NCBI RefSeq assembly: GCF_006345805.1
Contig: NC_042999.1
Coordinates: 4,650,001 to 4,714,000 of the forward strand
Reading direction: 5' to 3'
Origin: Octopus sinensis
Lineage: Eukaryota
Length of the DNA: 64,000 nt
Below, piece by piece: positions 4,491-48,671 of the stretch (positions are counted from its first letter, which is position 1; the number at the start of each line of letters is the position of its first letter). Below the pieces are notes generated by a model. The model ran no database searches. It was not told where the DNA came from and saw only the letters and a list, made by a program, of their open reading frames with translations. The position numbers were made by a program, and so were the translations under genes.

Positions 4491-4551
4491 ATGTCAAGAA
4501 TCTTACCAAAACATATCATTCTTGCTTTTATTGCAATCTTGTCCTCATCAG
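4491..4551 (+). CDS. Coding exon 1 (signal peptide) of a secreted C-type lectin-like + PAN/apple protein
   Basis: ATG at 4491 gives MSRILPKHIILAFIAILSSS+G, with a basic n-region and hydrophobic core. It ends at a strong donor CAG|GTAAGA (phase 1) that matches the next exon. Confidence 0.8.
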
Positions 4552-4967
4552 GTAAGATTTCTTTTGGTATTTTTTCTTCAACATCATTGTTAAACTATTT
4601 TCTTTTTTGAACAAATTCCGAAAAAAAACATAAAAAATATATCCCAAAACTACTGATATAAATGTTGAAATTATACTTAAAATCTATTTTTAAAAAGATT
4701 GTTATTTCCTTACGTGTGTGGTAAGAAGAGCTTGCTTCTCAACCACATGGTTCCGGGTTCAGTCCCACTACATGGCACCTTGGAAAAGTATCTTCTATTA
4801 TAGCCTTGGCCATGACCAAAGACTTGTGAGTAAATTTGGTAGACAGAAATGGAAAGAATCCCTTTATATATATATATATATATATACTAGAAAGTAATAC
4901 ATTTGTAAAGCAGTATTTTCTATTGAAAACTTTTTCACTGTTCTCATTCTGTTAATGGCTAAGTGTT

Positions 4968-5001
<34 letters not shown>

Positions 5002-8000
5002 GGTGGTTGTGTTTGTCTCCACCACTGCTTGACAACCAGTGCCACTGTTGGTGTGTTTACATCCCAGTAACCTAGCAGTTCAGCAAAAGAGACCAATAGA
5101 ATAAATACCAGGTTTGAAAAAATTAAGTCCTGGTGTCAATTCAATCAACAAAAAAGTTCTTCAAAGCGGTGCTCCAGCATAGCCACAGGCTAGTGACTGG
5201 AACAAGTTAAAGGATAAATAATTTGCTTTTGATATTTGAACTTGAAGTAGATAAGGCTATAAATAACAGCATGTATATATCAGATTATAGAACCCCTTTT
5301 GGATAGAAAAAAAGTCAAAGCCTGCCAGTGGGACTTGCCCCCATATCTCTTGTAAACATGAGAGATGTTCTACCATTGGCTCAAAGCATCCCTTCAAATT
5401 TCCCTGTGTTTTAGAAACTTTCTTCTTACCACCAATAATTGTCTGTTGTTGACATCATAAGAACGTAGAAAATCTGAACTCATAAAACACGAATTTATCT
5501 TCATAGATTCTTATGACATTATTTCATTTTTTCCCCTTTTTTTTCTATTACTTTTTCTTTTTAATCCCCGCCCACCTTTTGTAGATCAATTATCATTTGT
5601 TTAATTCCCATATCTATATAGTTGATCCTTCACCAACACCATCTCAATAAAACAATAGAATTAGGGATCTCCCAGCTTAATAAAAGCAGGAAAAGATTAA
5701 ATAGAAATATGATAATCTTAATCCACCTAAATTTATCAAAATCCAACTTTATTTAATTAAAAATAGTGCATGAAATTATATTTAACCCTTCCATTACCAT
5801 ATTTTTGTTGAAACACTCTAGGTTTGTTTTAATTAATATTCAATGTGAGAGCAAATGAAATTAAGCATTAACTAATATGCATCTATCAGTTATGGTCACC
5901 TTATTCTGTAAAAATGGTAAATAGTTCTGGTACTTTTCTACTCAAGGCAAAAGGCCTGAAATTTTGGGGGAGGGGGCCAGTCCATTAGATCGACCCCAGC
6001 ACGCAACTGGTATCTAATTTTTCAACCCTGAAAGGATGAAAGACAAAGTTGACCTTGGTGGAATTGGAACTCAGAATATAAAGACAGACGAAATACCGCT
6101 AAGCATTTCGCCCAGTGTGCTAACGTGGCTGAAACCACCTCTGGCTCTGTAGTACAAATGTCTTGTTTTCATAGGTTCTAAATTAAAATCTTCCACTAAA
6201 CCTTAGTCACAATTTATGTTCCTAACACTGTTTGCTTCCCAGCCACATGGTTCTAGGTTCAATCCCACCTTGAGCAAGTATTTTCTATTATAGCTTTGGG
6301 CCAACCAAAGAAGCCCATCATATATATGTGCGTGTGTCTATGTTTTTCCTCACCACTGCTTAACAACTGGTGTTGGTGTGTTTACATCCCTGTTTGGCAC
6401 GAGGGACCTCTTGAATAAGTACCAGGTTTAAAAATTAAGTACTGGGGTTGATTGGTTCAACTAAAATTCTTCAAGGTGATGCCCCAGCATGGCCATAGTC
6501 TGATGATTGAAACAGCTAAAGAATAAAAAAGCTAATAATAGCCGGTTGGTTGGTTGATTTCTCTAGTCAGATTTTACATCATATAGAGAGGGAGAGAGAA
6601 TAAAAAAGATATACAGGCAGAGTTAACATAAGTAAGAGAGTTCTATACTAAGCTTGGTGGCAGGCAATGAGTAAGAGAATGCCCTTCACACGCATACACA
6701 CACATTGAAAGAGAAAAAGCGATAGAGACAGACAAAGAGAAGAAAGAGTAAATACCAGAGTAATTATGGGAGAAGTTATACAAATGAGAAATTTGCTTTA
6801 TTTAATTTTATTTTAAGGTAAAAAGCATTTTTCTTTTGAATATCAGCATTCATTTTAGTGCTTTTTTTTTTATAAGTACCAAGAGATTTGATAAAAGTTA
6901 GATTATGCACACAATGTTTCCAGATATCAATCCAAGGGTGGTAAAAGTATTCTTCCAAAGTCCATATAATGAGTATCACTTTAGTAATAACATATTTGAT
7001 AACAGAATGATATGCATTTCTCTCATTATCATAATCATCGTGTAACTTCCATTTTCCATGCTGGCATGGGTTGAATGGTTTGACAGGAGCTGATAATGCC
7101 AGGGCTGCACCAGTTTCCAGAGTCTGTTTTGGGCTTGGTTTCTACCACTTGAAGCCCTTTCTAGTGCCAACCACTTTACAGAGTGTACTGAGTGATTTTC
7201 ATGTGACACCAGCACCTGTGTCTTTTAGATGGCACTATCACCACTGCTTTTTATGTGACACCATACCAGTGCCTTTTACTTGGTACTATTACCACTGCTT
7301 TCTATGTGACACCATCACCAGTGCCTTTTAGGTGGCACTATCACCAGTGCCTTTTACTTGGTACTATTACCACTGCTTTTTATGTAACACCTTTTACATG
7401 GCACCAGCACCGGTGTTTTTTAGGTGACACTATCACTAGTAACTTATAGGTGGTACTATCACCACTGCTTTTTATATGGCACCAGCACCATTGCTTTTCA
7501 TGTAGCACCAGCACCAACATCAGTGCTTTTTACATAGTATGTTAGTTTTGCGATATCATTTCTGTTGTGGTGGGCAGGTCTTCTCAACTACAACAATACA
7601 CCACAGATCTCAGTCCCCTGTCGTCTCCTTCATAAGACTCAGTATTTTGAGATCAGTCTTCAATAATTCATAATAATAAAATCAAATGGAAATTGTAGTT
7701 GTGATACCAGTGCTGGTGACATGTAAAAAGATCCATCTGAACGTGGCCGTTGCCAGCACCGCCTTGACTGGCCTCCGTGCCGGTGGCACATAAAAAGCAC
7801 CAACCGATCGTGGCCATTGCCAGCCTCGCCTGGCACGTAAAAAGCACCCACTACACTCACGGAATGGTTGGCGTTAGGAAGGGCATCCAGCTGTAGAAAC
7901 ACTGCCAGATCAGACTGGAGCCTGGTGCAGCCTTCTGGCTTCCCAGACTCCGGTTAAACCGTCCAACCCATGCTAGCATGGAAAACGGATGTTAAACGAT

Positions 8001-8289
8001 GATGATGATGATGAATTAAAAAAATTTCAATACATATAAAAAAGTGAGTAAATTATAAACAAAGAAGTCAGTCGTTATAAATGGTAAAGATCTACAAGAC
8101 AACACTTGACTTGGGTTTGTGAAAAATTGTTAAATATCTTCAATCACAGATTTTTCTACGTCTATTATTATCCTATCTCTATCAGACATGATACAGTTTC
8201 AAAATTTCACCTGAAAGGTGATATCTAAACTTATATAGAATCCACTGATTGCACCTGTCATTTCTCTCACCTGGTCATCAGCAATGAAG

Positions 8290-8470
8290 ACTTGTAATTA
8301 CTCTGGCTCAAGATCTCTTATTATTCCTCTTGGGTCATCTATTGTCACAAACCATTTTATGAACTCTTTCAGTTACCAGCAGATATTTGAGTATCTGTTG
8401 TCCTGCCATGACGATCACATCTATCTCTCAATGAAGTCAATGTCCTTGTAGACTTCAGGCACCCCCTCTT
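8290..8470 (+). pseudogene. Possible decayed AP-endonuclease fragment of a LINE
   Basis: Frameshifted LWLKIS...FEYLLSCHDDHI...NEVNVLVDF resembles APE-domain WLKI...GDFN segments. Confidence 0.3.
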
Positions 8471-11400
8471 ATCTCTCTTATACTCTCCCCAATCCTACTC
8501 TACTTGGTAGAAAGTGAATCATTTGTTATTCTGAACTATCTACAGCAGTTTAACACCTTCACCTATTTCTATCGTTCACCAACATAACAACTTGCCAAAT
8601 CATTATCATCATCATCATCGTTTAACATTCGTTTTCCATGCTGGCATGGGTTGGATGGTTCGACCGGGGTCTGGGAAGCCAGGAGGCTGCACCAGGCTCC
8701 AGTCTGGTCTAGCAGTGTTTCTACAGCTGGATGCCCTTCCTAATGCCAACCACTCTGTGAGTGTGGTGGGTGCTTTTCACATGCCACCGGCGCAGGGTTC
8801 AGAGGAGACTGGCAACAGCCACGATCAGTTGGTGCTTTTTACATGCCACCGGCACGGAGGCCAATCAAGGTGGCGCTGGCATCCACCACATTCAGATGGA
8901 GTTTTTTACATACCACCGGCACGGTTATCACAACTACAATTTCCATTTGATTTTTATTTTGATATTGATGTTGATGTACTTGACTCAATAGGTCTCCTCA
9001 AGCACAGCAGGTGACCCTACAATCCAAGGTAAGCACAGCAGCTGTCCTGTGAGCCATGAATTCACTTCATTTGTCTGACTTTTTTGTAAGATGTCTGTGT
9101 TTTGAAGCATCATATTTCCCAGCTTCAGACTTAGGCTGCATACTCAACCAATTAGATCAATTGGTGAGCTGAAATCTTATTACCAAATGGTCTATAGAAG
9201 GTTCTAGAACTTCTGAGCAAAAGGTGAATGAATTCAACTTTAGGCAGAGCTATCACAAGTATATGTGGGTCATGTTGCCTGCCCCCATATGATAGTCTCT
9301 CATCTCTCTCACCTGTTCTTGCTTGATTTAATTGACCATCACTGATTACAAAATTAGTATTACATCTCAGTATATATTTGCATTAACCAAATGATTACAT
9401 CATCGTCATCATCATCATCATCATCATAATTTAATGTCTGCTTTTCCATGTTTGCATGGGTTGTATGGGTTTTAGTGAGGCAGATTTCTCTATGGCCAAA
9501 TGCTTTCCCTGCCGACAACCAACTATTATTACTTGTTTTCAAACAAGGAATATTTCTGTATGAGCAAGCAAGCTTTTTGTAGAAACAAACAACAATGTTT
9601 ATGTGACAGTGATGCTTATTTTCAATCACCACATGACATCTAGACAAAGGAAAACACACACACACACATATATGTATATATACATACATATATATAAAAG
9701 TAAATAAATGGCACAACGAAGCACCGATATTTACTGGAAAATAGCAATCGTAATAAATACGACGCTATTGTATAGCTTCACTGTGTATATACTAGTAAAG
9801 ACGTGTGTGTGCAACAAACATATATATTATCATCTCATCATCATCATCATTTAACATCTGCTTTCCATGCTAGCATGGGTTGGACGATTTGACTGAGTTC
9901 TGGTGAGCCAGATGGCTGCACCAGGCTCCAATCTTGATCTCGCAGAGCTTCTACAGCTGGATGCCCTTCCTAACGCCAACCACTCCGAGAGTGTAGTGGG
10001 TGCTTTTTATGTGCCACTGGCATGAGGGCCAGTCTGGTGGTACTGGCAATGGCTATGTCCAAATAGTGTTTTCTACATTCCACCTACTGCACAGGAGCCA
10101 GTCCAGCAGCACTGGCAACGACCTTGCTATATATATATATATATATATATACAATGAGTTTTTATCATTTTCCATCTACCAAGGCTTTGATCAGCCTGAG
10201 TCCATAGTAGATATCACTTCCCCAATGTGCCATACGGTGGGACTGAACCTGAACCCGCATAACTGGGAAGGGAGATCCTCAATGAGCACCCCACCACAGA
10301 GAATATAGTTCCCAGGGAGATTCAGCATGATACAGAATGTGACAACACTGGCCCCTTTGAACTCCAGGTATTATTCATTTTTGCCAGCTGAGTGGACTGG
10401 AGCAAAGTGAAATGAAGTACCTTGCTCAAGGACACAACATACTACTGGGATTCAAACTCACAATCTTATGATCAGAAGCCAAACACCCTAACCATTAAGC
10501 CACTGGGGCTGGTGGCATAAACTACGACCTCTCCCCACATAATTACTGGCTTTGTGTCAAAATCAGAAACCTTATTAAGAACATATTAGTAATCCTCAGA
10601 TAAAAATAAACTAATTTCATTCATCATCATCATCATCGCTTAACGTCCGCTTTCCATGCTAGCATGGGTTGGACGATTTTGACAGAGGGCTGGCGAACCA
10701 GATGGCTGCACCAGGCTCCAATCTGATCTGGCACAGTTTCTACAGCTGGATGCCCTTCATAACTGTAGAAACTCTGCCAGATCTACAGTTAGGAAGGGCA
10801 TCCTGCCATTAGTTTTATATCCTTCTATGTGTTTGATATACAGGTTTCACAAAGCGGGGATAGACACAACTGTCTTCACACGACATGATTCAAATTACTC
10901 CACTAAACCCGATACTCCAATAAATACAAACACCCAACAATCTCAGTGACTTCCTACAACTGTTACAAACTCTCAACAACTCCTACCACTGTTCTCTCAT
11001 CTCAACCAATATGTTACTCTCTATAAGAGTTCGGCTAGGCCATTCTTCCAATTGAACAGGGGTGTCAATGACTCTTGCCATAACAGTCAGTGAATGTTTT
11101 CTAGATACAAATAGCAATGATAACAGAATATTTTCTATTTATTAAAATATATTTTCAGATCAACTTAACTTTCATATTTAATTTATCTCGGTGCAGTCCA
11201 ACTGGAGTGGCATGTCATTGTCTTTTCCTGGTTGGTATAACACATTAATGTTTCAGATAAGAAATATTTATGCCTTTCTTAAGAGTAATTAGTGTGATAA
11301 TTAAAACAAAAATAAATTAACAGATATTGTTGACATCATAAGAATATTATAAACCTCTGAGAGAATGTAAGATAATTCTTTTGTTTTTTGAACAGTAGAT

Positions 11401-14613: not shown

Positions 14614-14796
14614 GCTTGCATCCTTATTCTTTGAAACTTCAAAAGACTCTGAATAACCTTCTGCTCGGCAAGGTGTATCGCTGCTACAGTAGCACTACCT
14701 GGAAAATAGCTACAATGGTGTGTGCCCAAAATGGTCAAAACCTGGTCCAGTTACTGACTAAAGATGAACATAACTGGTTAGTAGACAGAGTGAAAT
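14614..14796 (+). CDS. Coding exon 2: N-terminal half of C-type lectin-like domain
   Basis: Acceptor tttttattgtcag| and donor AAAT|GTAAGT; 183 nt, phase 1-1. Translates (G)LHPYSLKLQKTLNNLLLGKVYRCYSSTTWKIATMVCAQNGQNLVQLLTKDEHNWLVDRVK, fitting the CTLD pattern TW..A...C...G..L......E..W/F. Confidence 0.85.
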
Positions 14797-21911: not shown

Positions 21912-22124
21912 CATCAATTGCTAGATTCTGGGTTGGTGGAATTCAGTTTCAACATCACTGGTACTGGAAATATCCAACATGGAGGATTCCGATAAAAAAG
22001 AGCCGATGGTTTATAGACTTCAGGGAAGATCAAAAAGTTGTTGCACATGAAGATCATTTAGATAGTCAAGGAACTTATTCAAAACAACATTTTATTTGTG
22101 AGGAGAATTATTTTTCAAGGAATG
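21912..22124 (+). CDS. Coding exon 3: C-terminal half of C-type lectin-like domain
   Basis: Acceptor tttaattatag| and donor AATG|GTAAGG; 213 nt, phase 1-1. Translates (S)SIARFWVGGIQFQHHWYWKYPTWRIPIKKSRWFIDFREDQKVVAHEDHLDSQGTYSKQHFICEENYFSRN, with the WVG, W.W and terminal FICE motifs of CTLDs. Confidence 0.85.
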
Positions 22125-24099: not shown

Positions 24100-25056
24100 C
24101 GAGAATGGATGAAGAGAGGTGTGTGAGAAAGTGCCAATCCCTAGCAGTTGAGGGAACCCGTGGAAGAGGTAGACCCAGGAAAACCTGGGACGAGGTGGTG
24201 AAGCACGACCTTCGGACGTTAGGTCTCACCATGGAAATGACTAGAGACCGAGACCTATGGAAGTATGCTGTGCGTGAGAAGACCCGGCAAGACTAGTGAA
24301 GCCATAATCCGTGGCCCCTACCTGGGACGTAGTCAGTCCACCTGTGCATACCTTCCTTCTTGTGACACTTGTGAAGACCTGTTGAGGCAAGTGAGAATCG
24401 AATCGAATCGTATCAAATCAAATCGAACCAAATCAAAATAGATGAACATCAATGGAATTTGTATCCTTGTGGTACCAGTGCCGGTGGCACATGAGAAAAC
24501 CATCCGAACGTGACCGTAGCCAGTACCGCAATGACTGGCCTCCGTGCTGAGGGCACGTAACAAACACCATCCGAGCGTGGCCGTCCGCCAGCCTCGTCTA
24601 GCACCTGTGTCGGTGACACATACGAAACACCATCCGAGCGTGGCCGTCTGCCAGCCTCGTCTGGCACCTGTGTCGTGGTGGCACATAAAAAACACCATCC
24701 GAGCGTGGCCGTCTGCCAGCCTCGTCTGGCACTGTGTCGGTGGCAGGGGCACATAAAAAAACACCATCCGAGCGTGGCCGTCTGCCAGCCTCGTCTGGCA
24801 CCTGTGTCGGTGGCACATAAAAAACACCATCCGAGCGTGGCCGTCTGCCAGCCTCGTCTGGCACCTGTGTCGGTGGCACATAAAATCACCCACTACACTC
24901 TCGGAGTGGTTGGCGTTAGGAAGGGCATCCAGCTGTAGAAACACTGCCACATCTGACTGGCCTGGTGCAGCCTTCGGGCTTCCCAGACCCCAGTTGAACC
25001 GTCCAACCCATGCTAGCATGGAAAGCGGACGTTAAACGATGATGATGATGATGATG
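24100..25056 (+). mobile_element. RTE-clade LINE 3' fragment with expanded 3'UTR tandem repeat
   Basis: MDEERCVRKCQSLAVEGTRGRGRPRKTWDEVVKHDL matches the 12.5-kb copy. About 7 tandem units of about 57 bp at 24500-24890; (GAT)n tail. Confidence 0.9.
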
Positions 25057-27525: not shown

Positions 27526-29240
27526 GTACTATTGTTGTTGTTGTTGTTGTTTATTTAATTTGTGATATTTGACGATTTTTCCATTGTTTTTCTTTGTACA
27601 CTTTCTTTTATTTCATTTGCTAATTTATCCCCTGTCTTATTTCCATTCATATCCATAGACACAGGCGTGACTGTGTGGTAAGAAGCTTGCTGGCAGAAAT
27701 GTTAGCACGCCAGGCAAAATGCTTAGCGGTATTTCGTCTGCCGCTACTTTCTGAGTTTGTCCTTCATCATCATCATCATCATCATCATTGTTTAGCGCCT
27801 GCTTTCCATGCTAGCATGGGTTGGACGGTTCAACTGGGGTCTGTGAAGCCAGAAGGCTGCATCAGGCCCAGTCTGATCTGGCAGTGTTTCTATGGCTGGA
27901 TGCCCTTCCTAATGCCAACCACTCCGTGAGTGTAGTGGGTGCTTTTACGTGCCACCCGCACAGGTGCCAGACGGAGCTGGCAAACGGCCATGAACGGATG
28001 GTGCTTTTTACGTGCCACTGGCACAGGGGCCAGGTGAGGCTGGCAACGGACACGAATGGATGGTGCTTTTACGTGGATAGTAAAGAAATAGGTATTTTGT
28101 CTGCCGTTAGTTTCCGAGTTCAAATTCCGTCAAGGTCGACTTCGCCTTTCATCCTTTCGGGATCGATAAATTAAGTACTTGTTAGACACTGGGGTCAATA
28201 TAATCGACTTAATCCCTTTGTCTGTCCTTATTTGTCCCCTCTATATTTATCCCCTTGTGGGCAATAAAGAAATAAGGAGCTCGCTTTTCAAACACATAGT
28301 TCTGGGTTCAGTTGCACTGTGTAGTACTTTGGACAAGTGTCTTCTACTTTAGCCTTGGGCTGACCGTGTGTGTGTGTATTTGTTCCCCACCACTGCTTGA
28401 GAACTGCTGATGGTGTGTTTACATTCCTATAACTCAGGGCATTTCAGAAAAAGAGACCAATAGAATAAGCACTCAGCTTAAAATTAAAAACATAAATACT
28501 AGAGTCAATTCATTCAACTAAAATTTCTTCAAGGCAGCGTGCCCCAGCATGGCCACAGTCTAATGACTGCAACAAGTAAAAGACAAAAAGATAAAGATGT
28601 TTATATAAATTTGCATTTAAATCATTGCTGTGTGGTAAGGAGCTAAGCGCAGGAGTGGCCGTGTGGTAAGTAGTTTGCTTACCAACCACTGGGTTCTGGG
28701 TTCAGTCGCACTGTGTAGTACTTTGGACAAGTGTCTTCTACTTTAGCCTTGGGCTGACCGTGTGTGTGTGTATTTGTTCCCCACCACTGCTTGAGAACTG
28801 CTGATGGTGTGTTTACATTCCTATAACTCAGGGCATTTCAGAAAAAGAGACCAATAGAATAAGCACTCAGCTTAAAATTAAAAACATAAATACTAGAGTC
28901 AATTCATTCAACTAAAATTTCTTCAAGGCAGCGTGCCCCAGCATGGCCACAGTCTAATGACTGCAACAAGTAAAAGACAAAAAGATAAAGATGTTTATAT
29001 AAATTTGCATTTAAATCATTGCTGTGTGGTAAGGAGCTAAGCGCAGGAGTGGCCGTGTGGTAAGTAGTTTGCTTACCAACCACTGGGTTCTGGGTTCAGT
29101 CCCACAGTGTAGCCTCTTGGGCAAGTGTCTTCTACTATAGCCTCGGGCCAACCAAAGCCTTGTGAGTGGATTTGGTAGACAGAAACTAAAAGAAGCCCAT
29201 CGTATATATTTATGTATGTATATATATGTGTGTGTGTGTG

Positions 29241-30017: not shown

Positions 30018-30292
30018 CTAGAGTAGAAAAGATGAGAGTTCAGGAAATGCCATGCAAAACCACACCCTACTTGTTGCTGAGTGTATGACCCTTCTTCTGT
30101 GTGACTGATCCAGTTAGCAAAAGTATGCAGCTGTCCCAGATTAGAATCATGTGATTGAGTAACACAGATATTTGTACTTTTCGTTTTTTATTTTTTTTAT
30201 TGTTATTTTAAATGACTTTAGTTATTCCGGTTCATACGGAGGAAACCAAACTTGATACAGCTTTCTTTCCTGCTTATCCCTTTAACATTTAA

Positions 30293-31002
30293 CCCTTTAG
30301 TTACCAACCCGGCTGAAATCACCTCTGGCTCTGTAGTACAAATGTCTTGTTTTCATAAGTTCTGAATAAAGATCTTCCACCAAACCTTAGTCACAATTTA
30401 TGTTCTAACATTAGTTGAATGATAACTAAGTTATTTTACTAAATTCTTTGTTATATTTAAAGTAATTGAAAGAAACACAGAGCATCTCAATAGAAATATG
30501 GTAGCAAAAGGGTTAAAGTTACCATGATATTTTTAACCCTTTAGTTACCAACCCGGCTGAAATCACCTCTGGCTCTGTAGTACAAATGTCTTGTTTTCAT
30601 AAGTTCTGAATAAAGATCTTCCACCAAACCTTAGTCACAATTTATGTTCTAACATTAGTTGAATGATAACTAAGTTATTTTACTAAATTCTTTGTTATAT
30701 TTAAAGTAATTGAAAGAAACACAGAGCATCTCAATAGAAATATGGTAGCAAAAGGGTTAAAGTTACCATGATATTTTTAACCCTTTAGTTACCAACTTGG
30801 CTGAAATCACCTCTGGCTCTGTAGTACAAATGTCTTGTTTTCATAAGTTTTGAATTAAAATCTTCCACCAAACCTTAGTCTCAATTTATGTTCCTAACAC
30901 TAGCTGAACAATAACTAAGTTATTTTACTAAATTCTTCGTTATATTTCAAATTAATTGAAAGAAACACAGAGCATCTCAAAATAAATACAGTAATGAAAG
31001 GG
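30293..31002. mobile_element. Three tandem piggyBac-type MITEs (about 220 bp each, 244-bp period)
   Basis: Each unit is TTAA|CCCTTT...AAAGGG|TTAA: units 30293-30512, 30537-30756 and 30781-31002. The first two are identical. Confidence 0.8.
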
Positions 31003-31438
31003 TTAAACCAGCTATGTCTGACACAAATATTCTACCTCTTTTATACTCAACCCATTCAGATCTGGCTTTTCCCACCTACCTTACAATGTAATTCTGAAAG
31101 TATACAATCTCATCATTGAAATCTGAAAGCTACAAGATAATACAAGATTAACACAAAACGATATGAATGAACAAGCATTACATATGAAAGAATAGTATTA
31201 AATGATAAAAGGTTAACCAGTGCAGTTAGCAGTTTGCATTTTCTAGATTCATCTAGCAACAAGTGAATAGCGATTAATTTAAGTGGCAAATATACTTCAC
31301 GTTGTCGTGCAGCTACTGTTTATACCACGTTCAGAGATTTATTATTGCTTGTTTACACTTTTTCGAGATCAGTGATTTTTTGTCACTGGAAAAAGGATAT
31401 AAATATTTGCATTAGAACCCCTTCGCATCGGAGACCGG

Positions 31439-34890: not shown

Positions 34891-35329
34891 TATATATATT
34901 ATATATACACACATACACAGCTTTAGTCAACCAAATTGTTTCATAAGATTTGGGTCAAGCGAGGGTTATACTCAAAGACCCTTGTTCCAAATGTTGTACA
35001 GTGGACCAAAAACCATGTGACTCTGAATCAAACTTCTTAACCACACAGCTATGCCCCTCTTATCTATCTAATTCCCCTTCCCACTGCAAATCACTTATTG
35101 TTAGTGTAACCATGGCGACAGAGCCTATTACGTTTCCTCTATGATTCATCACCAGTCACATAGATAGATCAATATATCCCTGTGTCACTGCCAGATATTC
35201 CCATTTTCTCTCCACATAGAGACTAACAACTTAATATAGACCTTTCCTTCTTCCTCTTCCTAGACAGAATTCCCTTTCTGACTGTCTGTCTGTCTGTCTA
35301 TCAATCTATCTATCCATCTATCTATCTTT

Positions 35330-35450
35330 TGATTTTACAATCCCTTTTGATCGAAAACCAAACCCCCTTTTTATCCCCAAAAGAAAAGCTCTACCTTGTA
35401 ATTTGTCCTGTCTGTGTGCAGCCCTGTGTGGCTAATAAAGAAACATATCT
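35330..35450 (+). mobile_element. Very short 3'-end copy of the same Tx1-like element
   Basis: Aligns by eye with 37830-37965 (AAAAGAAAAGCTCTACCTTGTAATTTG...GTGCAGCCCTGTGTGGCTAATAAAGAAACATATCT). CTGT/CTAT repeats lie on both sides. Confidence 0.85.
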
Positions 35451-35454
35451 TTCC

Positions 35455-35518
<64 letters not shown>

Positions 35519-35550
35519 GTCTGTCTGTCTATCTATCTATCCATCTATCT

Positions 35551-37965
35551 TGTTTGGACTTGTTTGGAGACGTCTTAGCAGCGGTATACTGCAACTGGCA
35601 GCAAAACAGGAGCATACCCGGTTTTGTGAGTCGAGGAGCTGTAACTCTGCTGAAGAAAGATCCAAACAAGGGAAACATTATAGATAACTTTAGGCCAATC
35701 ACTCTGCTCAATGCAGACCTGAAAATTTTGACAAAGGTGTTAGCCAAGAGGTTGGCGCTTGTCATGGAGAAACTGGTCGACAACACACAAACGTGCGCCG
35801 TGCCGGGCCGGAGCATCCATGACAACCTCCATCTGATGCGCTACATCATAGACAGGGTAGTTAACGAACCTGGCATGGGTGGGGCCCTGATCAACTTGGA
35901 TCAATCGAAAGCCTTTGATAGGGTAGACCATCGATACTTGGAGGCAGTCCTGAGAGCGGCTGGTTTCGGTCCCGTCTTCCGCAGCTGGATAGGTGCCTTG
36001 TACAGAGGCATCCGTTCGGTAATTCGCGTAAATGGACATCTATTGAGACCCTTCGACATTGTACGTTCGGTCCGTCAGGGATGCCCCCTCTCGGCGCTTC
36101 TATACGTATTGACTCTTGAGCCACTACTGCGGAAGCTGGCGACTCTGAGGGGCATCCCACGAGAATTAGGATGCGGGACGAGCGTGTCTGCATACGCGGA
36201 CGACGTCACCGTCATAGTGTCAAGCCACGAGCACATCGAGCGGGTCGGCGAGACACTGAAAGACTACGAAGCGGTGACAGGAGCAAAAATCAACCAGGAA
36301 AAGTCAGTGGGCTTGCGGCTCGGCACCTGGAGAAGCAAGCCCATGCCGTCCACCAGTACCTCCGTCGTGGGACGCTGGACAGACGGCCCGGTTGAGTTGC
36401 TCGGGGTCTGGTTCGGTCCGGACCTCCAAATGGAGAAGAACTGGAACGAGATAACGAGTAGGGTGGTCACTCTCGCCCAGCAATGGGCCGAGAGGAAACT
36501 GTCCCTAAAAGGTCGGGCGGAGGTGGTGAACGCGTACATCGCGTCCATCATCTACTACCGCCTGACCGTCGTACCTTGTCCCGACCCTACCATCACCAAG
36601 CTAGAACGCATCCTCTTCCGCTTCTTGTGGAAAGGATGCGTCCCGATGGTCAGGCGATCCATTTGCTGTCAACACCCGTTAAAAGGAGGGCTGGGCATGC
36701 TGTGGTTGATGATGCGCAGACACGCGCTGAGACTGCGACATCTCCGGCTCTATGTAGACGACGGTGAACAGGTGTGGTCGCCGTTTGTGAGGCACGCATT
36801 CCCGCAACTCGTCTCCATGACCGAACTACAGTCGTGGATCAAAAAGAGGCCGAGGAAGGGCGAATGGCACCGCAGGTGTCGCGTTGCTCTCAAGCAACTC
36901 TGCTGTCCCGGGTCGACCTTGAGTGACTTCAACACAACCAAAGCATTCTATAGGGGATTAGTGGAGGGGAGGTACGACGACGAGCTCGGGGCAAACCTGG
37001 GCGTCGACGAGGAATACCTGACCCGCCTGTTTCAAACGACTTTCGGCCCGGGACCTATGGACAACTTCCAGAGATCCCTGGCCTGGCGGTGCTACCGAGA
37101 AGCGCTACCCGTTCGGGATAAGCTCTATAGGCATGGCTCGAGAAACACGGGGCCGACCTGCCCGAGATGTGGGCAGAGCGACGAAACCGCTCTGCACGCA
37201 ATCGTGCAGTGTCCAGCAATTTCCCACCTGTGGGCTTATGTCGAATGACTGCTGTCACGTGTGGAACATGTCGGTTTATCAGCCGAGTCTATCGTTAATA
37301 TCGTCACGCCTCCTTCCTTCAAACGGGAAGGAAGAGCTATTTTTATCATACTTGTGGCTATGGCGAAAGAATGTATCTGGTGGACGCGTCTGAAAGGATT
37401 AGAGACAAACACTTTCCTTCTGGTCAATCTCTCATCAACTTCTTCAAGTATCACTTGAAGAAAAAGTGAGAGTAGAGAGGCAAGTTTGTCTAGTGAATGT
37501 TTTAAAAAAAGATGGGTGAATGTAGCAAGGATGGCACGTATGAATGACGAAGCCACCTTGACTATGATTCTATGAACCGTAAAAATTAATACAGAGAGTT
37601 GCTTATTTGCAATAAAAAAAAAAAAAAAAAAAGAAATATAACATGTGACTTCATTGACCGAGGTTACCGTGGTCTTTTCCGTAGGCTTTTCTTTCCACGG
37701 GTAAACCTCACCCGTCCTCCCCTTTACACTTCATATTGACATTTCTGTGATAACGATCCCTATTGATCAATTTTTTTTCCTCTCCCCCTTTTTTTTTACC
37801 CCCCCCCCTTTTTTTGTCCTCTTTCTCTCCTTTTACGATCCCTTTTGATCGACACCCCCTTTTTTTTTTTTTTAAAAAAAAATTTTTTTTACCTTCAAAA
37901 GAAAAGCTCTACCTTGTAATTTGTTCTATCTGTGTGCAGCCCTGTGTGGCTAATAAAGAAACATA
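35551..37965 (+). mobile_element. 5'-truncated Tx1/L1-group non-LTR retrotransposon (ORF2 RT + CCHC + 3'UTR)
   Basis: RT motifs FRPITLLNADLKIL, LDQSKAFDRVDH, VRQGCPLS and AYADDV, plus C-terminal CPRCGQSDETALHAIVQC. The frame is open to TGA at 37248, then continues with small frameshifts to about 37575. GC-rich relative to the host; the 3'UTR ends GCTAATAAAGAAACATATCT; both flanks are (CTAT)n. Confidence 0.95.
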
Positions 37966-37972
37966 TCTATCC

Positions 37973-38015
<43 letters not shown>

Positions 38016-38017
38016 CA

Positions 38018-38048
<31 letters not shown>

Positions 38049-38059
38049 CTATCTATCCA

Positions 38060-38131
<72 letters not shown>

Positions 38132-38133
38132 CA

Positions 38134-38181
<48 letters not shown>

Positions 38182-38183
38182 CA

Positions 38184-38243
<60 letters not shown>

Positions 38244-38249
38244 CATCTC

Positions 38250-38287
<38 letters not shown>

Positions 38288-39019
38288 CATCTCTCTCTCT
38301 ATCTATCTATCTATCTATCTATATATATATATATTATATATATATATAAATCAAAAAAGCAACAAGGATATCCAGAAGATATCCTTGTTGCTTATTTTGA
38401 TTTTAATCTCCTTATTTTAAATTGTATGGGTAATACCATACTAAATTCTGGTGTCTCAACTTAAGTATCATATTCATCTGAATCTATGTGTGTGTGTATG
38501 TATATATATACATATATATATATACACACACACACATATTATAACACACATGCATACATACTTAAATGGTGGGAGTTGACTCTTGACCAAGTAAGACCAC
38601 TTCTTAAACTCAGTCTTTGTAGATTTTCAGAGCAAGAACTTCCTGTTTGTGAATTTACTTTGAGTGGATAAAGTATTACACAGCAATGAGCCAACTTTTC
38701 AGCACAATCAGTTATAAAATCTGCCACAACAAAGGTTAAGACAACCAGGACCCAGCAGTACTTCAGGGCTTTTATACATGTCTACTTTTTCATAGAAGAA
38801 TGTTCAAACAGGAACTGGCATGTGATTTTAAACTGCCCTTGGTAGTGAGGCCCTGTTTTATAGTTATCAGGTTTTTGAGGAGTGTGGAACCACCTCTTAG
38901 CCTCTATTGTGACCAGGTCTGATCTAACCCAGGGTGGGAGCACCTGTTACGGTCCCAGCTGTGGATTAGCAAGTGAACAAATGGGAATAAAGGACATACA
39001 TAATCCACATACATATCCA

Positions 39020-39918: not shown

Positions 39919-41314
39919 TATATATACATTCATACATTCATACTCAGCAGCAGCAGCACAACTATTTTGGCTGTCTGTCAATATTGGTGATAACTTTCCA
40001 TATATAAAGTTACGAGTTATAGTATCGAAAGAAGATTGCTCCGCTTCACTAATTAAGCAATTTAAATCACTAATTAAGCAACTTAAAGCAATGTCATCTC
40101 ACTTTGGGATGTCTGGCACAACACCTCCTCCCTTTCAGATTTTTTTTCTTTCCCCGACTGGCCTCATGCCGGTGGCACGTAAAAAGCACCATTCGTTCGT
40201 GGCCGTTGCCAGCCTCGCCTGGCCCCCATGCCGGTGGCACGTAAAAAGCACCATCCGTTCATGGCCATTGCCAGTGCCACCCCAACTGGCCTCGTGCCGG
40301 TGGCACGTAAAAAGCACCATTCGTTCGTGGCCGTTGCCAGCCTCCCCTGGCCCCCGTGCCGGTGGCACATAAAAAGCACCATCTGATCGTGGCCGTTGCC
40401 AGCCTCGCCTGGCCCCCATGCCGGTGGCACGTAAAAATCACCCACTACACTCATGGAGTGGTTGGCGTTAGGAAGGGCATCCAGCCGTAGAAACATTGCC
40501 AGATCAAACTGGGCCTGGTGCAGCCTCCTGGCTTCCCAGATCCCAGTCGAACCTTCCAACCCATGCTAGCATGGAAAGCGGACACTAAACGATGATGATG
40601 ATGATGACAACATTATCATTTTTTTCTTCAGAATGCCACAGGTAGTACCAGTTTACATTGTTTACTGGTAGTTCTACTAATACATAGCGGCCTGACTTAA
40701 ATCCTTCACATGGATTTATTAATATTATTATTTTTTTCTTCCACACAGAATTATTTTTCTCCTCAGAATGCCACAGGTAGTATCAATCTACATTGTTTAC
40801 CGATAGCACTACTAACATATAGTGACCTGACAGAAATCCTACAAATGGATTTGTATTATTTTTCACTATGTGTAGGTCAGTTCTTTGTTAGAGTTCCAGT
40901 TTTATCAGATATTTTTTTTCTTCAGAATCTTTTTTCAATAGAATTTATATATTTTTCATTGTGTGTACAGTATTTTTCACTGTGTATAGTTCAAATCCTA
41001 CTTTGGGATTTTTAATATTTTTCACCGTGTGTAGTTGTGTCTTCTTACACAATCCATCTGTGTTGTATCTTATCAGCCACTGCTTGTAGTTCAAAATCTT
41101 TCTTCGACAGGATTTTAAAATATTTTTCACTGTGTGTGTTCAAATCCTCATCACCACAGGTATGTCCCGCATTATGATGACATATTTCGTCATCTGCATG
41201 ACTGGCCCATACGGTGTATCTCGCCGACTGACACTTCTTGCTGTGGTCTTACTTGGTCAAGAGTCGACTCCCACCATTTAAGTATGTATGCATGTATGCA
41301 TGTGTGTTATAATA

Positions 41315-42640: not shown

Positions 42641-44504
42641 TGGTTGTGCTTTGACAGTTCCATTTCAGATGATTGTAACAACGGTGAAAAAAATATCAAT
42701 GTTAATTTATTGATGCATTTAAGCAAGTCTATGCCTGTATTATCAGACAATTGCAAAACAAATGTTCAAAAAATTTCAAAACTCTGCAAAAATCCAGTAC
42801 AAATTCTTCATGGTTCAAAACATTACTTACTTTTTACTCAACCTGATACAATTTGTTGTGGGTTTTGTACCAATTGGCAGAACTGTAATCCATCCAGGCA
42901 TCATTTTGTTAGGCAAGGCAGACATCTCAAGACATATACATTATTATTATTGGAAAAAATTCAAAGTCTTACAGCTGTTTCTGGGATATCCCCAAGTATG
43001 AGATATTCCATCATCAGAGACAAATAGGGAAAAATAGGGAAAATGAGAAGGATATATATTAATGAAATGGTGACATAGAGGATGGGAGTAAAAGAATAAG
43101 GAGATAAAGAGAGAGAAGAAAAAAGAAGCATGAAAGTTCATAGTTCAATTTTCCAATGTTGTAGAAACATGTTTCTATAATTTACAGTTTTAAGTAAATT
43201 TCCAGAAAATCAATTTAATTCACATACACAAATGATACACTTACTTATATACATGCACACACACATACACACACACACACAGAGGAGATTAAGTGATATA
43301 GTTTAAAACTGTTTGAAACTGTTACCTAAAATTAGATATGCTTTAGACTTTACAAAGCTTTGGAATGATATTAAACTATAATACATTGTGTGTGTGTGTG
43401 TGTGTGTGTGTGTGGCATTATATGTATATGTGTATGTGTGTAAATCGTATATTTTCTTTTGTTTTGGTACAAAATTGTGATCGTTATCTTTGACCTTTTC
43501 CTTGTTTCAGTCATCAGACTGCGGCCATGCTGGAGCACTGTTTTGAAGAATTGCTAGTCAAATGAATCAACCCCGGGTTCTTATTTCTTTTTTAAAACTG
43601 GTGCTTATTCCATCAGTCTCTTTTGCTGAACCACCAAGCTATGGGGGCACATAAAAACACCGCCATTGGTTTTCAAGTGATGGGGGAACAGACAGACACA
43701 AATACACACGTGCACACACACACATATCATACCCACAACCACACACTCACACACACACACACATATCATACCCACAACAACACACTCACACACACACATA
43801 TCATACCCACAACCACACACTCACACACACACATACACACACACACATATACGATGGGCTTCATTCAGTTTCCGTCTACCAAATCCACTCACAAAGCTTT
43901 GGTCACCCTGAAGTTATAGTAGAAGACCTATTCCCAAGCTGCCATGCAGTGGAATTGAGCCCAGAACCATGTGGCCGGGAAGTGCACTTCTTATCACACA
44001 GCCACAGCTGCTCATGTCTTGGTGAAGAGACACTGGAAAGAGAAAATGGCCGAAATATCTCAGCTATTTCTTATCAACTCCATTGGAGATACAGTAATGG
44101 CAATGGTCATTGTGGAGCATTGGTTGTGAAACCGAATGCACGGAGAGATGGGGAAGAGAGCTGGAGGATAGATTTGGAAATTATGGGAAGAGGTTGGGGA
44201 AAATTTTGATTGAGGGAAAAAATAAGAGTGAAGACTAGAGAGAGAAAGGAAGAGTAATGTATATATGCATATGTGTGTGTATGTGTATATATATATATGT
44301 ATCATCATCATCATCATCGTCGTTTAACGTCCGTTCTCCATGCTAGCATGGGTTGGACGGTTCGACCGGGGATCTGGGAAGCCAGAAGGCTGCACCAGGC
44401 TCCAGTCTTATCTGGCAGTGTTTCTACAGCTGGATGCCCTTCCTAACGCCAACCACTCCGTGAGTGTAGTGGGTGCTTTTTACGTGCCACCTGCACAGTG
44501 TATA

Positions 44505-44537
<33 letters not shown>

Positions 44538-44652
44538 GGCCTGCTCGCTTAGCCAGCGGGGTGGCGTCATTTGAAGGCTAAAACAATGCGAACGCATGGT
44601 GACCAGCAATGTGTAGCAACATCTCATAGCCTGGTCGGTCACGGTGATCATG

Positions 44653-44695
<43 letters not shown>

Positions 44696-44806
44696 ATATA
44701 TATACTATATCAAGAATGAGTTGGTGTGTGTGTCTGTGTCTGTGTGTATATATATATATTTGTATGTATGTATGTATGTAAGTATGTATGTATATATGTG
44801 TGTATA

Positions 44807-44848
<42 letters not shown>

Positions 44849-44999
44849 TATATATATGTATGCGTGTATGTGTATATATATATATACACACACAGACACA
44901 CACACCAATTCATTCTCTATATAGTATATATATGTGTGTGTGTAGTTATGTATGCATGTATATATATATATGTATGTATATAAGGGGAAGCTTTATGAA

Positions 45000-45180
45000 A
45001 ATAGACAAAAGACGAAGGCAGGTAGAAAACAAACGAACAATTGTATTAGTATGGCGCTCAGGAAATATAAATAAAACAAGTCTTTAACGTTTCGAGCCTA
45101 CGCTCTTCAACAGAAAGATACACAGAGAGAAAAAAAACACAGAAAGAAGGAGAGAAAAAAATGCGTGCAGTAGCTAACGT
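45000..45180 (-). mobile_element. Penelope-like terminal fragment carrying a minimal hammerhead-like motif
   Basis: rc TCTTT CTGTTGA A GAGC GTAG GCTC GAAAC GTT AAAGA at 45080-45119. Homologous fragments at about 2910-3100(-), 32340-32540(+) and 46010-46210(-), all abutting (TA)-rich microsatellite. Confidence 0.6.
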
Positions 45181-45219
45181 ATATATGTATATATGTAAAT
45201 ATGTATGTGTATATATGTA

Positions 45220-45311
<92 letters not shown>

Positions 45312-46695
45312 GATATATATATATATCCAGTGAGAGAGAGAGAGAGGAACTATAGAAAGGAAGTGAAGATGCACTATGAAACTGTAATGAACTCCCAAAA
45401 TTAAAGTATGCGCTGTAAGTTCATAAGAACCTTATTTTTCTGGAGGGTATCAAAGGATTTACAAAAATAAATGACAACGATTATCAGCATCAGAGGGATT
45501 AAAGGGCAGCAAAGTTGGTTTATGTGGGATTTAAAATTAGAGAAAAAGGGGAAAAAAACTAAATAGAGTAATTTATTTAGTTTGGTGCTTTTCAAGTACA
45601 AACATCTTTACTACCATTAATTTATATTTATATAGTAATTCATGGAGTCATTAATGTATTATAATTAATGAATATATACCGTTAAAAGGCATGATGCTGT
45701 GGTTTTTGTCTGAGAAAAATATCTTCATAAACATATATTAGAATTACAATATATATTAAAATGAGGCAAATATCATCCCAGCAGCAACTTCAGATGCACT
45801 GCAGCCGTTTTGGACCTTGTCAATGACATGTACCCATCACCTCATGCTTAAACATAATTGTCTCTTTTGATATATAGCAAACAAGGAATAATATATTGAC
45901 TGAGATTAGGGGAAAATTTGGTGGAATAAAAACTAAGTGTATGCAATTGAAACAACATTAAAATGAAATAGCCATCTGTGAACTATACTTAATATATATA
46001 TATATATATAAAATGGGAAAGTTTACGAAAATAAACAAATGACGAAAGCAGTTGGAGTACAAACAAACAAATGTATTAGTATAGCGCTCAGGAATAGAAA
46101 TAGAAAAAGTCTTTTACGTTTCGAGCCTATGCTCTTTGACAGAAAGATACACAGAAAAAAACAAGGACAGAAAAAAATGCGTGTAGGAGCTAACGATCTA
46201 TCATGGCATCCTAACTTCGGACATATACATATATACATATATACATATATATGTGTGTGTGTGTATAATTGAAATATGCATAGCGGGACTCATGGAGGCA
46301 ATGACCAAGACCTTTGGCATTATGTTGTGCTTGGGAAGAAGATCCATCAAACCGAGTAAAATCACAGTCATGGCAGATACTGGCGTCACCCATTACATTC
46401 TCGGAGTGGTTGGCATTAGGAAGGGCATCCAGCCTTAGAAAACCATGCCAAATCAGACTGGATCCTGGCACAGTTTTCCAGCATGCCAGCCCAGTCAAAC
46501 CATCCAGCTCATACCAGCATGGATAACAGACATTAAATGACGATGATATCTGTGTGTGTGTGTGTTGTGTAGTTGTCACTAAATGTGACTGTAGATGCTA
46601 CTAGTACAGTCAGAATTAGTGACAACTGGATTTTGCCTATACAGTTTATATTGCTCCCAGCTGCCACATATATATATATATATATAAATATTATT

Positions 46696-46738
<43 letters not shown>

Positions 46739-46828
46739 GGGTAAAATTAATTAATTAATTAATTAATAATCAATAATTTTACCAAGTAGTTCAGTACATT
46801 AAAATAACGTTTTTGAGAAACATTATAC

Positions 46829-47264
46829 AAATATTCTATAATTATCAGCATAATTATAATCAGCTAATTGCTTCACCAAGCACCAAATTTAGAAATATCA
46901 GTTAAAATACTTTTTCCGCTGCCATAAATATGTCCCAGACGGTAACACACATTTTTACGTAGGCAAAGAAAAAAAATAACGAATCCACACAGATTAGCCA
47001 CATACACATTTCGGGATTAAAGTAAAGTTATATTTCCTTACTTATCAGTGCAGGATTTCAAATACAAATTTGAGAGTGTTAGAATTAGATATGTACGCAA
47101 TCAAGTGTTATTGCATAACTGATATATATGCACTTCCAAAAATATACAGCTGAGATATTTATGGTAGCGGAAAAAGTATTTTAACTGCTATTTCTAAATT
47201 CAGTGTGTGGTGAAGCAATTAGCTGACCTCTGATTTTAATTATGCTTATAATTATAGAATATTT
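46829..47264. repeat. MITE/foldback-like element with inverted arms of about 105 bp
   Basis: The arm starting at 46829 (AAATATTCTATAATTAT...AAAATACTTTTTCCGCTGCCATAAATAT) is the reverse complement of about 47150-47264. Confidence 0.85.
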
Positions 47265-47919
47265 ATATATATATATATATATATATCATCATCATTATCA
47301 TCATCGTTTAATGCCCAACCACGTCCCACCCATGCTAGCTTTCCATGCTGGCATGGGTTGGACGATTTGACTGAGGACTGGTGAACCAGATGGCTGCACC
47401 AGGCTCCAATCTTGATCTGGCAGAGTTTCTACAGCTGGATGCCCTTCCTAATGCCAACCACTCCGAGAGTGTAGTAGGCACTTTTATGTGCCACTGGCAC
47501 AAGGGCCAGCCAGGCGGTACTGACAATGGCCATGCTCAAATGATGATTTTTATGTGCTACGTGCACGGGAGCCAGTCCAGCGGCACTGGCAACGACCTTG
47601 CTCAAATGTTTTTTCACGTGCCAGTAAGGCGACACTGGTAACGCTCACGCTCAAATGCTTTTTAGGTGCCCCGCTCTAGCAACGATCACATTCGGATGGT
47701 GCTCTTAGTGCTCCACTAGCATGGATGCCAGTCATCAAATTTGATTTCGATTTCACTTGCCTCAACAGGTCTTCGCAAGCAGAGTTTAGTGTCCAATGAA
47801 GGAAAGGTATGCATAAGTGGGCTGATTACACCCCTGGCATTGGCCATGAGGTTAGGGTCTCATTTGGCTTGCCGGATCTTCTCACCAGAGTAAGCACATA
47901 AATGTGAAACAAGGTGGAC

Positions 47920-48060
47920 AAAAGAGTACTCAAATACCAGAGGTAGAGTAACATGCTTTGCTTAAAAGCAGCAGAAATATAGCAAAAGCTGTTACTCGGA
48001 GTTTCATGTTCCCGTTCATCGGACAGTTTTGTTAAAATAAATATATGAATATTTATATAC
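47920..48060 (-). mobile_element. Second Penelope-like fragment family with decayed hammerhead motif
   Basis: rc AAAA CTGT CCGATGA ACG GGAA CAT GAAAC TCCGA GTA ACAG C TTTT at 47985-48030. A more decayed homolog lies at 3157-3200(-). Confidence 0.5.
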
Positions 48061-48441
48061 ATTTATATACATTGCCAGCCTCGCTTGGCCCCCGTGCCGG
48101 TGGCACGTAGCACCATCCGTTCGTGGCCATTGCCAGCCTTGCCTGGCCCCCGTGCCGGTGGCACGTAAAAAGCACCATCCGTCCGTGGCCGTTTGCCACC
48201 CTCATCTGGCACCTGTGCCGGTGGCACGTAAAAAGCACCCACTACACTCATGGAGTGGTTGGCGTTAGGAAGGGCATCCAGCCGTAGAAACACTGCCAGA
48301 TCAGACTGGAGCCTGATGCAGCCTCCATGGCTTCTAAGACCCCAGTTGAACCGTCCAACCCATGCTAGCATGGAGAACGGACGTTAAACGATGATGATGA
48401 TGATGATGATGATACATATAAATCTATGTAATTTCTTTCAG

Positions 48442-48671
48442 ATATTTTCACTAAAGTAACTTCCCATGAATCCGTAGAGAAGCTGCTGTCAAATGGTCGT
48501 GGTGGAGAAATAGAATGCGCATCTAAATGTTTGCTCACACACGATTGTCAGGTGATTGTCGTTAAGAGGGATGGAACTTGTAAACTCTACAGTGTTGGTA
48601 GAGCAAACAGAAACATTGACTGCAGGTCTGCAGGAAACCAATGCTTTTATAGAGACAAACCAAAATACTGA
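48442..48671 (+). CDS. Terminal coding exon: PAN/apple-like domain
   Basis: Acceptor atttctttcag|, phase 1. Translates (D)IFTKVTSHESVEKLLSNGRGGEIECASKCLLTHDCQVIVVKRDGTCKLYSVGRANRNIDCRSAGNQCFYRDKPKY*. The C-x3-C-x5-C...C-x-L-Y spacing is PAN-like, and AATAAA follows downstream. Confidence 0.75.

Follow-up and report, generated by a model that had tools for sequence, protein, structure and literature searches.

[quoted passage not shown] In the window, i.e. the whole 64-kb stretch of DNA analyzed (CM016861.1, bases 4650001-4714000), the four exons lie where the preliminary description had placed them, with GT-AG borders and phase-1 junctions, and joined together they encode 228 aa, a full-length match at 100% identity to RefSeq XP_029633109.1, "uncharacterized protein LOC115209117". 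The gene range on the NCBI record, 4491-48671, equals the span first picked out from the letters. The suggestion of a hidden or new gene does not hold, since NCBI already has exactly the same model; LOC115209117 is an ordinary spliced animal gene, already annotated and neither hidden nor new. The gene seemed "invisible" because a bacterial-style list of open reading frames cannot display short spliced exons. Exons 1, 3 and 4 were indeed missing from that list: read from start codon to stop codon exons 1 and 4 yield 39 and 46 aa (exon 2 yields 76 aa), and exon 3 has no in-frame ATG, GTG or TTG. In eukaryotic windows such lists miss short spliced exons that have no ATG, and invisibility in them is expected and no sign of novelty.

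The features are collected in Table 1. The exons comprise 687 nt of coding sequence with the terminal TGA (48669-48671) as the sole stop, and exon 1 is identical to residues 1-20 of XP_029633109.1. The donor sites read AG/gtaaga, AT/gtaagt and TG/gtaagg for exons 1, 2 and 3; the acceptors of exons 2, 3 and 4 read ttattgtcag/, ttaattatag/ and tttctttcag/, the first of these consisting of a polypyrimidine tract and a cag. About 85 nt 5' of the ATG lies GTATAATTAATAAGG, an AT-rich motif that resembles a TATA box. Shuffled extracellular modules usually come as phase-1 exons that each carry a module or half-module, and in LOC115209117 each module or half-module is on its own phase-1 exon.

Table 1. 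Features of LOC115209117 and its surroundings (positions within the 64-kb window)
Feature	Position	Strand	Description
Exon 1	4491..4551	+	61 nt; ATG at 4491; predicted signal peptide MSRILPKHIILAFIAILSSS plus first base of G21
Exon 2	14614..14796	+	183 nt; phase 1-1; aa 21-81; linker and N-terminal CTLD half
Exon 3	21912..22124	+	213 nt; phase 1-1; aa 82-152; C-terminal CTLD half
Reverse-transcriptase ORF of non-LTR retrotransposon	35329..37248	+	639 aa; in intron 3, outside the protein; RVT_1 E 4.6e-32, zf-RVT E 6.9e-8
Exon 4 (terminal)	48442..48671	+	230 nt; aa 153-228 plus TGA; probable six-cysteine PAN/apple-like module
AATAAA polyadenylation signal	48744..48749	+	73 nt 3' of stop codon

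The N-terminus was described as signal-peptide-like, and inspection by eye agrees: it shows an n-region with basic residues, a hydrophobic core of nine residues (IILAFIAIL) and a c-region reading SSSG. No other hydrophobic stretch follows this core by eye in the 228 aa, and the product is predicted to be secreted.

Exons 2 and 3 together encode a full CTLD (aa ~37-150), as originally proposed. Exon 2 holds the W49..A..C57 motif and both CTLD helices, and exon 3 holds FWVGG (its version of the WIGL motif), WYW, a long-loop region that is degenerate and has no EPN/WND, and FIC144EE. The Pfam Lectin_C match has 22.6 bits, exactly the gathering cut-off of 22.6, over the N-terminal half of the domain only, and the Pfam and PDB alignments run gapless over the exon 2/3 junction. 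A PDB sequence search returned CTLDs only (best NKR-P1B, E 1e-3), and the 25 non-self matches of an exhaustive HMMER scan, all of them multi-CTLD proteins, are restricted to aa 21-174. An hhalign comparison gave 98.1% probability for aa 37-154 against positions 4-125 of a 132-position CTLD profile, a partly circular figure since the profile left out the query itself but was built of segments chosen because they matched it. The residues that define the fold are kept, i.e. W49, the C57-C144 outer disulfide (FICE), FWVGG and W97-Y-W99; the two cysteines, FWVGG and W97-Y-W99 fall in columns that are invariant or nearly so in the alignment. AlphaFold2 (AF2) reaches pLDDT 76-89 in the CTLD core, support for the fold that is partly circular as well since the program was fed a CTLD alignment; on the single sequence the mean pLDDT is 36. 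The best 50 Foldseek matches are all CTLDs, with Endo180 and mannose-receptor CTLDs, NKR-P1B, LLT1, Clr-11 and CLEC9A at the top, at target TM-scores of 0.6-0.67.

The designation "lectin" is doubtful, for the domain has lost both EPN/QPD and WND, the motifs that bind calcium and sugar: the EPN column is occupied by PIK/IKK, and HED..LDS stands in the WND region. The inner disulfide is also missing, with zero cysteines between C57 and C144, and several related CTLDs in the alignment are likewise without it. Functional CTLDs have often lost EPN/WND, e.g. those of NK receptors, and NK-receptor-type CTLDs bind protein ligands without calcium. By analogy with these, the octopus CTLD most likely acts calcium-independently on a protein or other non-sugar ligand and is most likely no true lectin. 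The NK-receptor-type CTLDs (group V: NKR-P1B, LLT1, Clr-11, CLEC9A, CD94) are those that it resembles most; they share with it the lack of EPN/WND, and they supply both its best PDB sequence match and some of its best fold matches. They are vertebrate type II membrane receptors, usually dimers, whereas the octopus protein has a predicted N-terminal signal peptide and an extra PAN-like module, is without an evident membrane anchor and without the inner disulfide, and is only ~20% identical to them. Proteins of the mannose-receptor family and insect multi-CTLD proteins (lymphocyte antigen 75-like, C-type mannose receptor 2-like) head the exhaustive sequence search, and Endo180 and the mannose receptor are fold matches; these are 800-2000 aa long and carry 5-10 CTLDs, the majority of which still have EPN/WND, in contrast to the single CTLD of the octopus protein. 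Their high scores arise because they are summed over repeats, the best single domain scoring 25.6 bits.

The PAN-like domain ascribed to exon 4 stands as probable only. A PAN_3 match, the cysteine spacing and a predicted helix-plus-hairpin speak for it; the position of that match just under the Pfam cut-off and modest model confidence speak against it. PAN_3, a profile that draws mainly on nematode CW domains, reaches 20.6 bits where 21.1 are required, i.e. 0.5 bits under, with E 3.9e-4 over positions 24-54 of the 71 in the profile; the Pfam scan listed neither PAN_1 nor PAN_4, nor any other cysteine-rich family at E up to 10. In the PAN core, four cysteines (C-x3-C ... C ... C) link a helix and a beta-hairpin. 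The cysteines of exon 4 are spaced C178-x3-C182-x5-C188-x10-C199-x13-C213-x6-C220, and the C-x3-C-x5-C-x10-C portion agrees with the PAN core of plasminogen. In the AF2 model a helix (174-185) is followed by a hairpin (189-204; strands 189-195 and 198-204) at pLDDT 53-68, falling below 50 past residue 207. There is a minor though real chance that the C-terminal module is instead an unrelated small disulfide-rich domain whose cysteine content produced a chance match to PAN_3. The score under the cut-off, the partial coverage of the profile and the low AF2 confidence would fit such a domain, as would the sequence searches with the PAN exon, which gave only chance matches to G-beta-5 in the PDB and zero candidates in a word-index search with this exon alone; the Foldseek query was the whole protein and its output was dominated by the CTLD. 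Against a chance match, the PAN_3 E value is already corrected for 24,736 Pfam models, competing cysteine-rich families are absent, and the predicted order of helix and hairpin agrees, together with the spacing, with the PAN core. Exon 4 probably encodes a PAN/apple-like module.

If so, the protein may present two binding surfaces. The CTLD would bind a protein or other non-sugar ligand independently of calcium, the PAN-like module would offer a second surface for protein or carbohydrate, and the whole could be a soluble protein that recognizes or bridges its ligands through two sites. Of the putative immune, venom-gland or matrix roles that had been raised, the one in the venom gland found nothing specific in the literature on octopus salivary gland lectins.

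The junction of exon 3 with exon 4, like expression of the gene, is predicted on the basis of splice and poly(A) signals and the identical NCBI model. That the four exons join without stops is in itself not beyond chance: 3' of exon 3 there are 75 different open frames, each 60 codons or longer, that can be entered in phase 1, so stop-free joining is weak evidence for exon 4. What does exceed chance is the gapless CTLD across the exon 2/3 junction, the six-cysteine PAN-like match, the AATAAA signal and the independent, identical NCBI model. It is improbable that the CTLD gene is real and exon 4 is not its usual 3' end, so that the PAN-like exon is part of a different transcript or the predominant isoform ends elsewhere, e.g. 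by read-through past the exon 3 donor, which would add 13 codons before a stop. Such an arrangement would accord with the ease of entering downstream frames in phase 1 and with the intervening 26-kb intron, rich in repeats and owing its size in part to the retrotransposon (a LINE) that sits inside it. It would accord too with the RNA record, in which the 90% protein cluster consists of a single member from a single contig, that of the genome itself, and the protein is encoded by none of the assembled RNA contigs in the collection, and with the finding of no two-domain relative of the same architecture. Against it, the NCBI pipeline arrived independently at exactly this junction, and AATAAA follows exon 4, whose acceptor is strong. 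Exon 4 cannot start a protein alone because a TAA closes the frame four codons 5' of the acceptor, and an upstream phase-1 exon is needed. The annotation has no further gene in the 10 kb downstream of exon 4, and tblastn of the protein against the 64-kb window found no paralogous or additional CTLD or PAN exons. Among the 20 longest other ORFs of the window the Pfam scan matched the LINE reverse transcriptase alone, and there is therefore no second protein-coding gene candidate. The four-exon gene ending in exon 4 is the preferred model.

The preliminary description called the protein possibly lineage-specific, and this is compatible with the searches: no orthologue or relative of the same architecture was found in ~15 billion proteins, cephalopod genomes lying outside that search. 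That the locus is silent, decaying or mispredicted, a leftover with a persisting open frame and no functional product, is very improbable: its orphan status (extending to every transcript-derived entry), the loss of CTLD ligand-binding motifs and the lack of any precomputed Pfam domain for XP_029633109.1 in the databases might suggest it, but all four exons are undamaged, their splice sites canonical and their frame free of shifts and internal stops, the fold-defining residues and the even six-cysteine set of exon 4 are preserved, and NK receptors are functional without EPN/WND.

A functional LOC115209117 might be a young gene confined to the Octopus lineage, formed by phase-1 exon shuffling of a CTLD and a PAN-type module followed by divergence so fast that orthologues in other sequenced animals escape detection, and an independent invention of the CTLD + PAN-3 combination otherwise known in Caenorhabditis only; this is a speculative reading and rather unlikely to be right in full. 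If it were true, fast evolution would suit a host-pathogen or predator-prey interface, e.g. haemolymph recognition or a salivary secretion. The CTLD + PAN-3/CW architecture itself is known already in C. elegans, and the octopus protein is a divergent further member. The C. elegans class IV CLEC proteins, encoded by 16 genes, have 1-2 CTLDs plus 1-2 CW/PAN-3 domains (PMC5297725), and the combination is documented in this species (PMC5297725, PMC8051790). These proteins are secreted, and the octopus protein resembles them in being a predicted secreted combination of a CTLD and a probable PAN-3/CW module, PAN_3 being its only PAN-type Pfam match, if under threshold. It differs in phylum and in having no detectable sequence kinship with them past the generic domains, none appearing in the search output; because the phylum differs, the octopus architecture was perhaps assembled independently.

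Within the molluscs, secreted single-CTLD lectins are expanded in bivalves and few in cephalopods, according to a survey of mollusc C-type lectins (PMC10140915). The octopus protein is like these in being a small, putatively secreted mollusc protein with one CTLD, and unlike them in its missing sugar-binding motif and added PAN-like domain; molluscan C-type lectins were absent from the named or top matches of the sequence searches. No literature on LOC115209117 or XP_029633109 was found, including in the searched text and supplements of the same survey (PMC10140915). The present work attaches a domain description, i.e. a predicted signal peptide, a CTLD without the sugar site and a probable PAN/apple module, to an unnamed RefSeq protein, which is of modest value. 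Since cephalopod C-type-lectin-like genes are unusually few (PMC10140915), each divergent addition shifts the count slightly, and a CTLD + PAN-3 protein outside the nematodes would be a minor point for studies of domain shuffling.

A last observation concerns the cysteines, which number nine in the mature protein, an odd count that leaves C43 without an evident partner. As a candidate for the N-terminal hairpin cysteine of long-form CTLDs C43 was rejected, since the alignment puts it on the first strand, three residues past that position, and it has no upstream partner. C43 is probably either free or buried.

[quoted passage not shown] The four proposed exons were taken straight from the window sequence and spliced computationally. 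Their 687 nt translate into 228 aa with no internal stop and with phase 1 at all junctions, and an AATAAA lies 73 nt 3' of the stop; the direct reading and the joined translation thus bear out the proposal of four stop-free, phase-compatible exons. Exons 1, 3 and 4 do escape the ORF list, as was also claimed, because bacterial-style ORF listing handles short eukaryotic exons in this way: the start-to-stop frames of exons 1, 2 and 4 are 39, 76 and 46 aa, and exon 3 has no in-frame ATG, GTG or TTG. The gene itself is not hidden, since NCBI annotates the identical model. The product matches XP_029633109.1 (UniRef100_A0A6P7S4H3; "uncharacterized protein LOC115209117 [Octopus sinensis]") at 100% identity over its full length, it is encoded on CM016861.1 of assembly GCA_006345805.1, and the recorded gene range coincides exactly with window positions 4491-48671; the window spans 4650001-4714000 of this chromosome. 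The by-eye reconstruction therefore equals the NCBI pipeline model, and the gene model was already known. No precomputed domain is recorded for the protein in the databases, a literature search found no paper mentioning LOC115209117 or XP_029633109, and its 90% cluster holds a single member from a single contig, that of the genome. None of the assembled RNA contigs in the sequence collection encodes the 228-aa protein, which is mild evidence against high or broad expression.

Features of the LOC115209117 locus and its repeats (window positions)
Feature	Position	Strand	Details
Exon 1	4491-4551	+	61 nt; opens with ATG; donor AG/gtaaga
Exon 2	14614-14796	+	183 nt; acceptor long polypyrimidine tract + cag; donor /gtaagt
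Exon 3	21912-22124	+	213 nt; acceptor ttaattatag; donor /gtaagg
Exon 4	48442-48671	+	230 nt; acceptor tttctttcag; closes with TGA
~63 bp repeat	7785, 8826, 12925, 17211, 24552-24885, 27995, 40158-40442, 48070-48239, 52512, 53038-53126, others		
Open frame reading GRGRPRKTWDEVVKHDLRTLGL, intron 3	24115-24294	+	
Long-period tandem duplication, intron 3	28299-29148		394 bp x 2.2 copies, 98% matches
Long-period tandem duplication, intron 3	30288-31007		244 bp x 2.9 copies, 95% matches
LINE / non-LTR retrotransposon ORF, intron 3	35329-37248	+ (host gene's strand)	639 aa; RVT_1 E 4.6e-32; zf-RVT E 6.9e-8
(TATC)n microsatellites	35446-35550 and 37964-38345		
tRNA-like sequence, ~1 kb downstream of the stop	49693-49764	+	Rfam tRNA 53.6 bits
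Minisatellite	57589-58494		26 copies of 35-bp unit CACAAGCAGTAATAGGGGAGCATCATAGCTATGAT, 94% matches

Judged by alignment, the joining of exons 2 and 3 exceeds chance: a full CTLD is obtained only when the two are joined, and the CTLD alignments to Pfam and to PDB chains cross the junction gap-free. For exon 4 the stop-free joining alone is weak evidence, because the sequence downstream of exon 3 offers 75 different open frames, each 60 codons or longer, that a phase-1 junction could enter. Exon 4 is distinguished by a strong acceptor, a PAN-like match that includes six cysteines, a poly(A) signal after the stop and the independent NCBI model, and it cannot begin a protein alone since its frame is shut four codons upstream.

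On profile and model evidence the region of aa ~37-150 is a genuine CTLD, and on this point the sequence and structure searches agree with the preliminary description. Pfam Lectin_C matches aa 21-152 at 22.6 bits, exactly the gathering score, over profile positions 2-59 only, and the PDB sequence matches are CTLDs without exception (best NKR-P1B, E 1e-3). When 1.84 billion representatives were scanned exhaustively with HMMER, 25 matches other than the protein itself appeared, all to multi-CTLD proteins and within aa 21-174 only, whose strong E-values are sums over repeats, the best single domain scoring 25.6 bits; those named are insect and hemichordate mannose-receptor-like proteins, with no molluscan protein among them. 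Against a CTLD profile of 20 segments, query left out, hhalign gave a probability of 98.1% over aa 37-154 and hmmsearch 50.5 bits over aa 38-147, figures somewhat inflated because the segments were picked for matching the query. The AlphaFold2 model, built on an alignment of 47 single-CTLD proteins found with the CTLD profile, has a mean pLDDT of 68 and 76-89 in the CTLD core. Foldseek against the PDB returned CTLDs only (those of Endo180 and the mannose receptor, NKR-P1B, LLT1, Clr-11, CLEC9A; target TM-score at most 0.67), a test that is partly circular because the input alignment consisted of CTLDs. Conserved residues in the alignment are W49, C57, L63, W87 and G89 (FWVGG, the WIGL motif), W99 (WYW) and C144 (FICE); the EPN/QPD triplet, the WND motif and the inner disulfide are absent. 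Judged by these motifs, the domain is not a calcium-dependent lectin.

The exon 4 module is probably a PAN domain, though on thinner evidence than that for the CTLD. PAN_3 is the sole cysteine-rich family reported by the Pfam scan at E up to 10 (E 3.9e-4, profile positions 24-54 of 71), and the spacing C178-x3-C182-x5-C188-x10-C199 fits the four-cysteine PAN core of plasminogen. AlphaFold2 places a helix at 174-185 followed by a hairpin (189-195 / 198-204). These features favor the PAN claim, but the PAN_3 score of 20.6 bits falls under the cut-off of 21.1, the pLDDT of helix and hairpin is a modest 53-68 (below 50 in the last 22 residues), and the region has no PDB sequence match, no candidate in the word-index protein search and no covering match in the exhaustive HMMER scan. 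A third bridge of the module would link C213 to C220. The mature protein has nine cysteines; among them C43, which the alignment puts in the first strand, has no obvious partner and may be free or interchain.

By eye the N-terminus resembles a signal peptide, with basic residues, then the hydrophobic IILAFIAIL, then SSSG, and since no later hydrophobic segment follows, the product is probably secreted. The putative signal peptide and the PAN-like module occupy one exon each and the CTLD two; modules on phase-1-bounded exons are a classical signature of extracellular module shuffling. The octopus CTLD has lost its calcium/sugar site and is similar to the NK-receptor type of domain, whose ligands are proteins. 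For PAN modules, PMC5297725 cites Tordai et al. (1999) on binding to proteins or carbohydrates. From these two properties a soluble two-site binding or bridging protein is proposed as the likeliest mechanism, with immunity, saliva or matrix as possible settings; the literature search gave nothing favoring the venom-gland idea.

A CTLD plus PAN-3/CW architecture occurs in C. elegans as CLEC class IV, with 16 genes (PMC5297725; also PMC8051790), but no sequence link of these to the octopus protein was seen beyond generic domains. Very small CTL repertoires are reported for cephalopods (PMC10140915); that paper and the supplements searched do not contain the LOC115209117 identifier, which would be understandable because the CTLD scanned alone barely reaches the Pfam threshold. 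Searches confined to protein databases found no orthologue. One of 50-90% identity would be expected in the protein-cluster search and a more distant one in the exhaustive HMMER scan, so the gene may be lineage-restricted or fast-evolving.

The source gene table, which reaches base 58671, holds no other protein-coding gene inside the window. A minus-strand neighbor just upstream of it (CM016861.1 4644491-4648647; L001 1-4157), with a 242-aa product and faint EF-hand matches, could act as a synteny anchor for orthologues in other cephalopods. The LOC115209117 introns are large because they are packed with repeats, and contain many microsatellites and minisatellites. A dispersed ~63 bp repeat containing GGCACGTAAAAAGCACCATCCG matches 16 times at up to 3 mismatches, counting both strands, where 0 matches are expected. 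It probably belongs to the abundant interspersed repeats of octopus; it often forms short tandem arrays, one of which stops ~200 bp before the exon 4 acceptor. The GRGRPRKTWDEVVKHDLRTLGL frame resembles the C-terminal tail that is conserved among ORF2 proteins of retrotransposons, and it probably represents a further remnant of such an element. The anticodon of the tRNA-like sequence was left unnamed by ARAGORN; by eye its loop TTTGTAA gives TGT (Thr), and there is a T-run ~12 nt further downstream. The sequence may be a genuine tRNA-Thr(UGU) gene or may instead form the head of a SINE derived from a tRNA.
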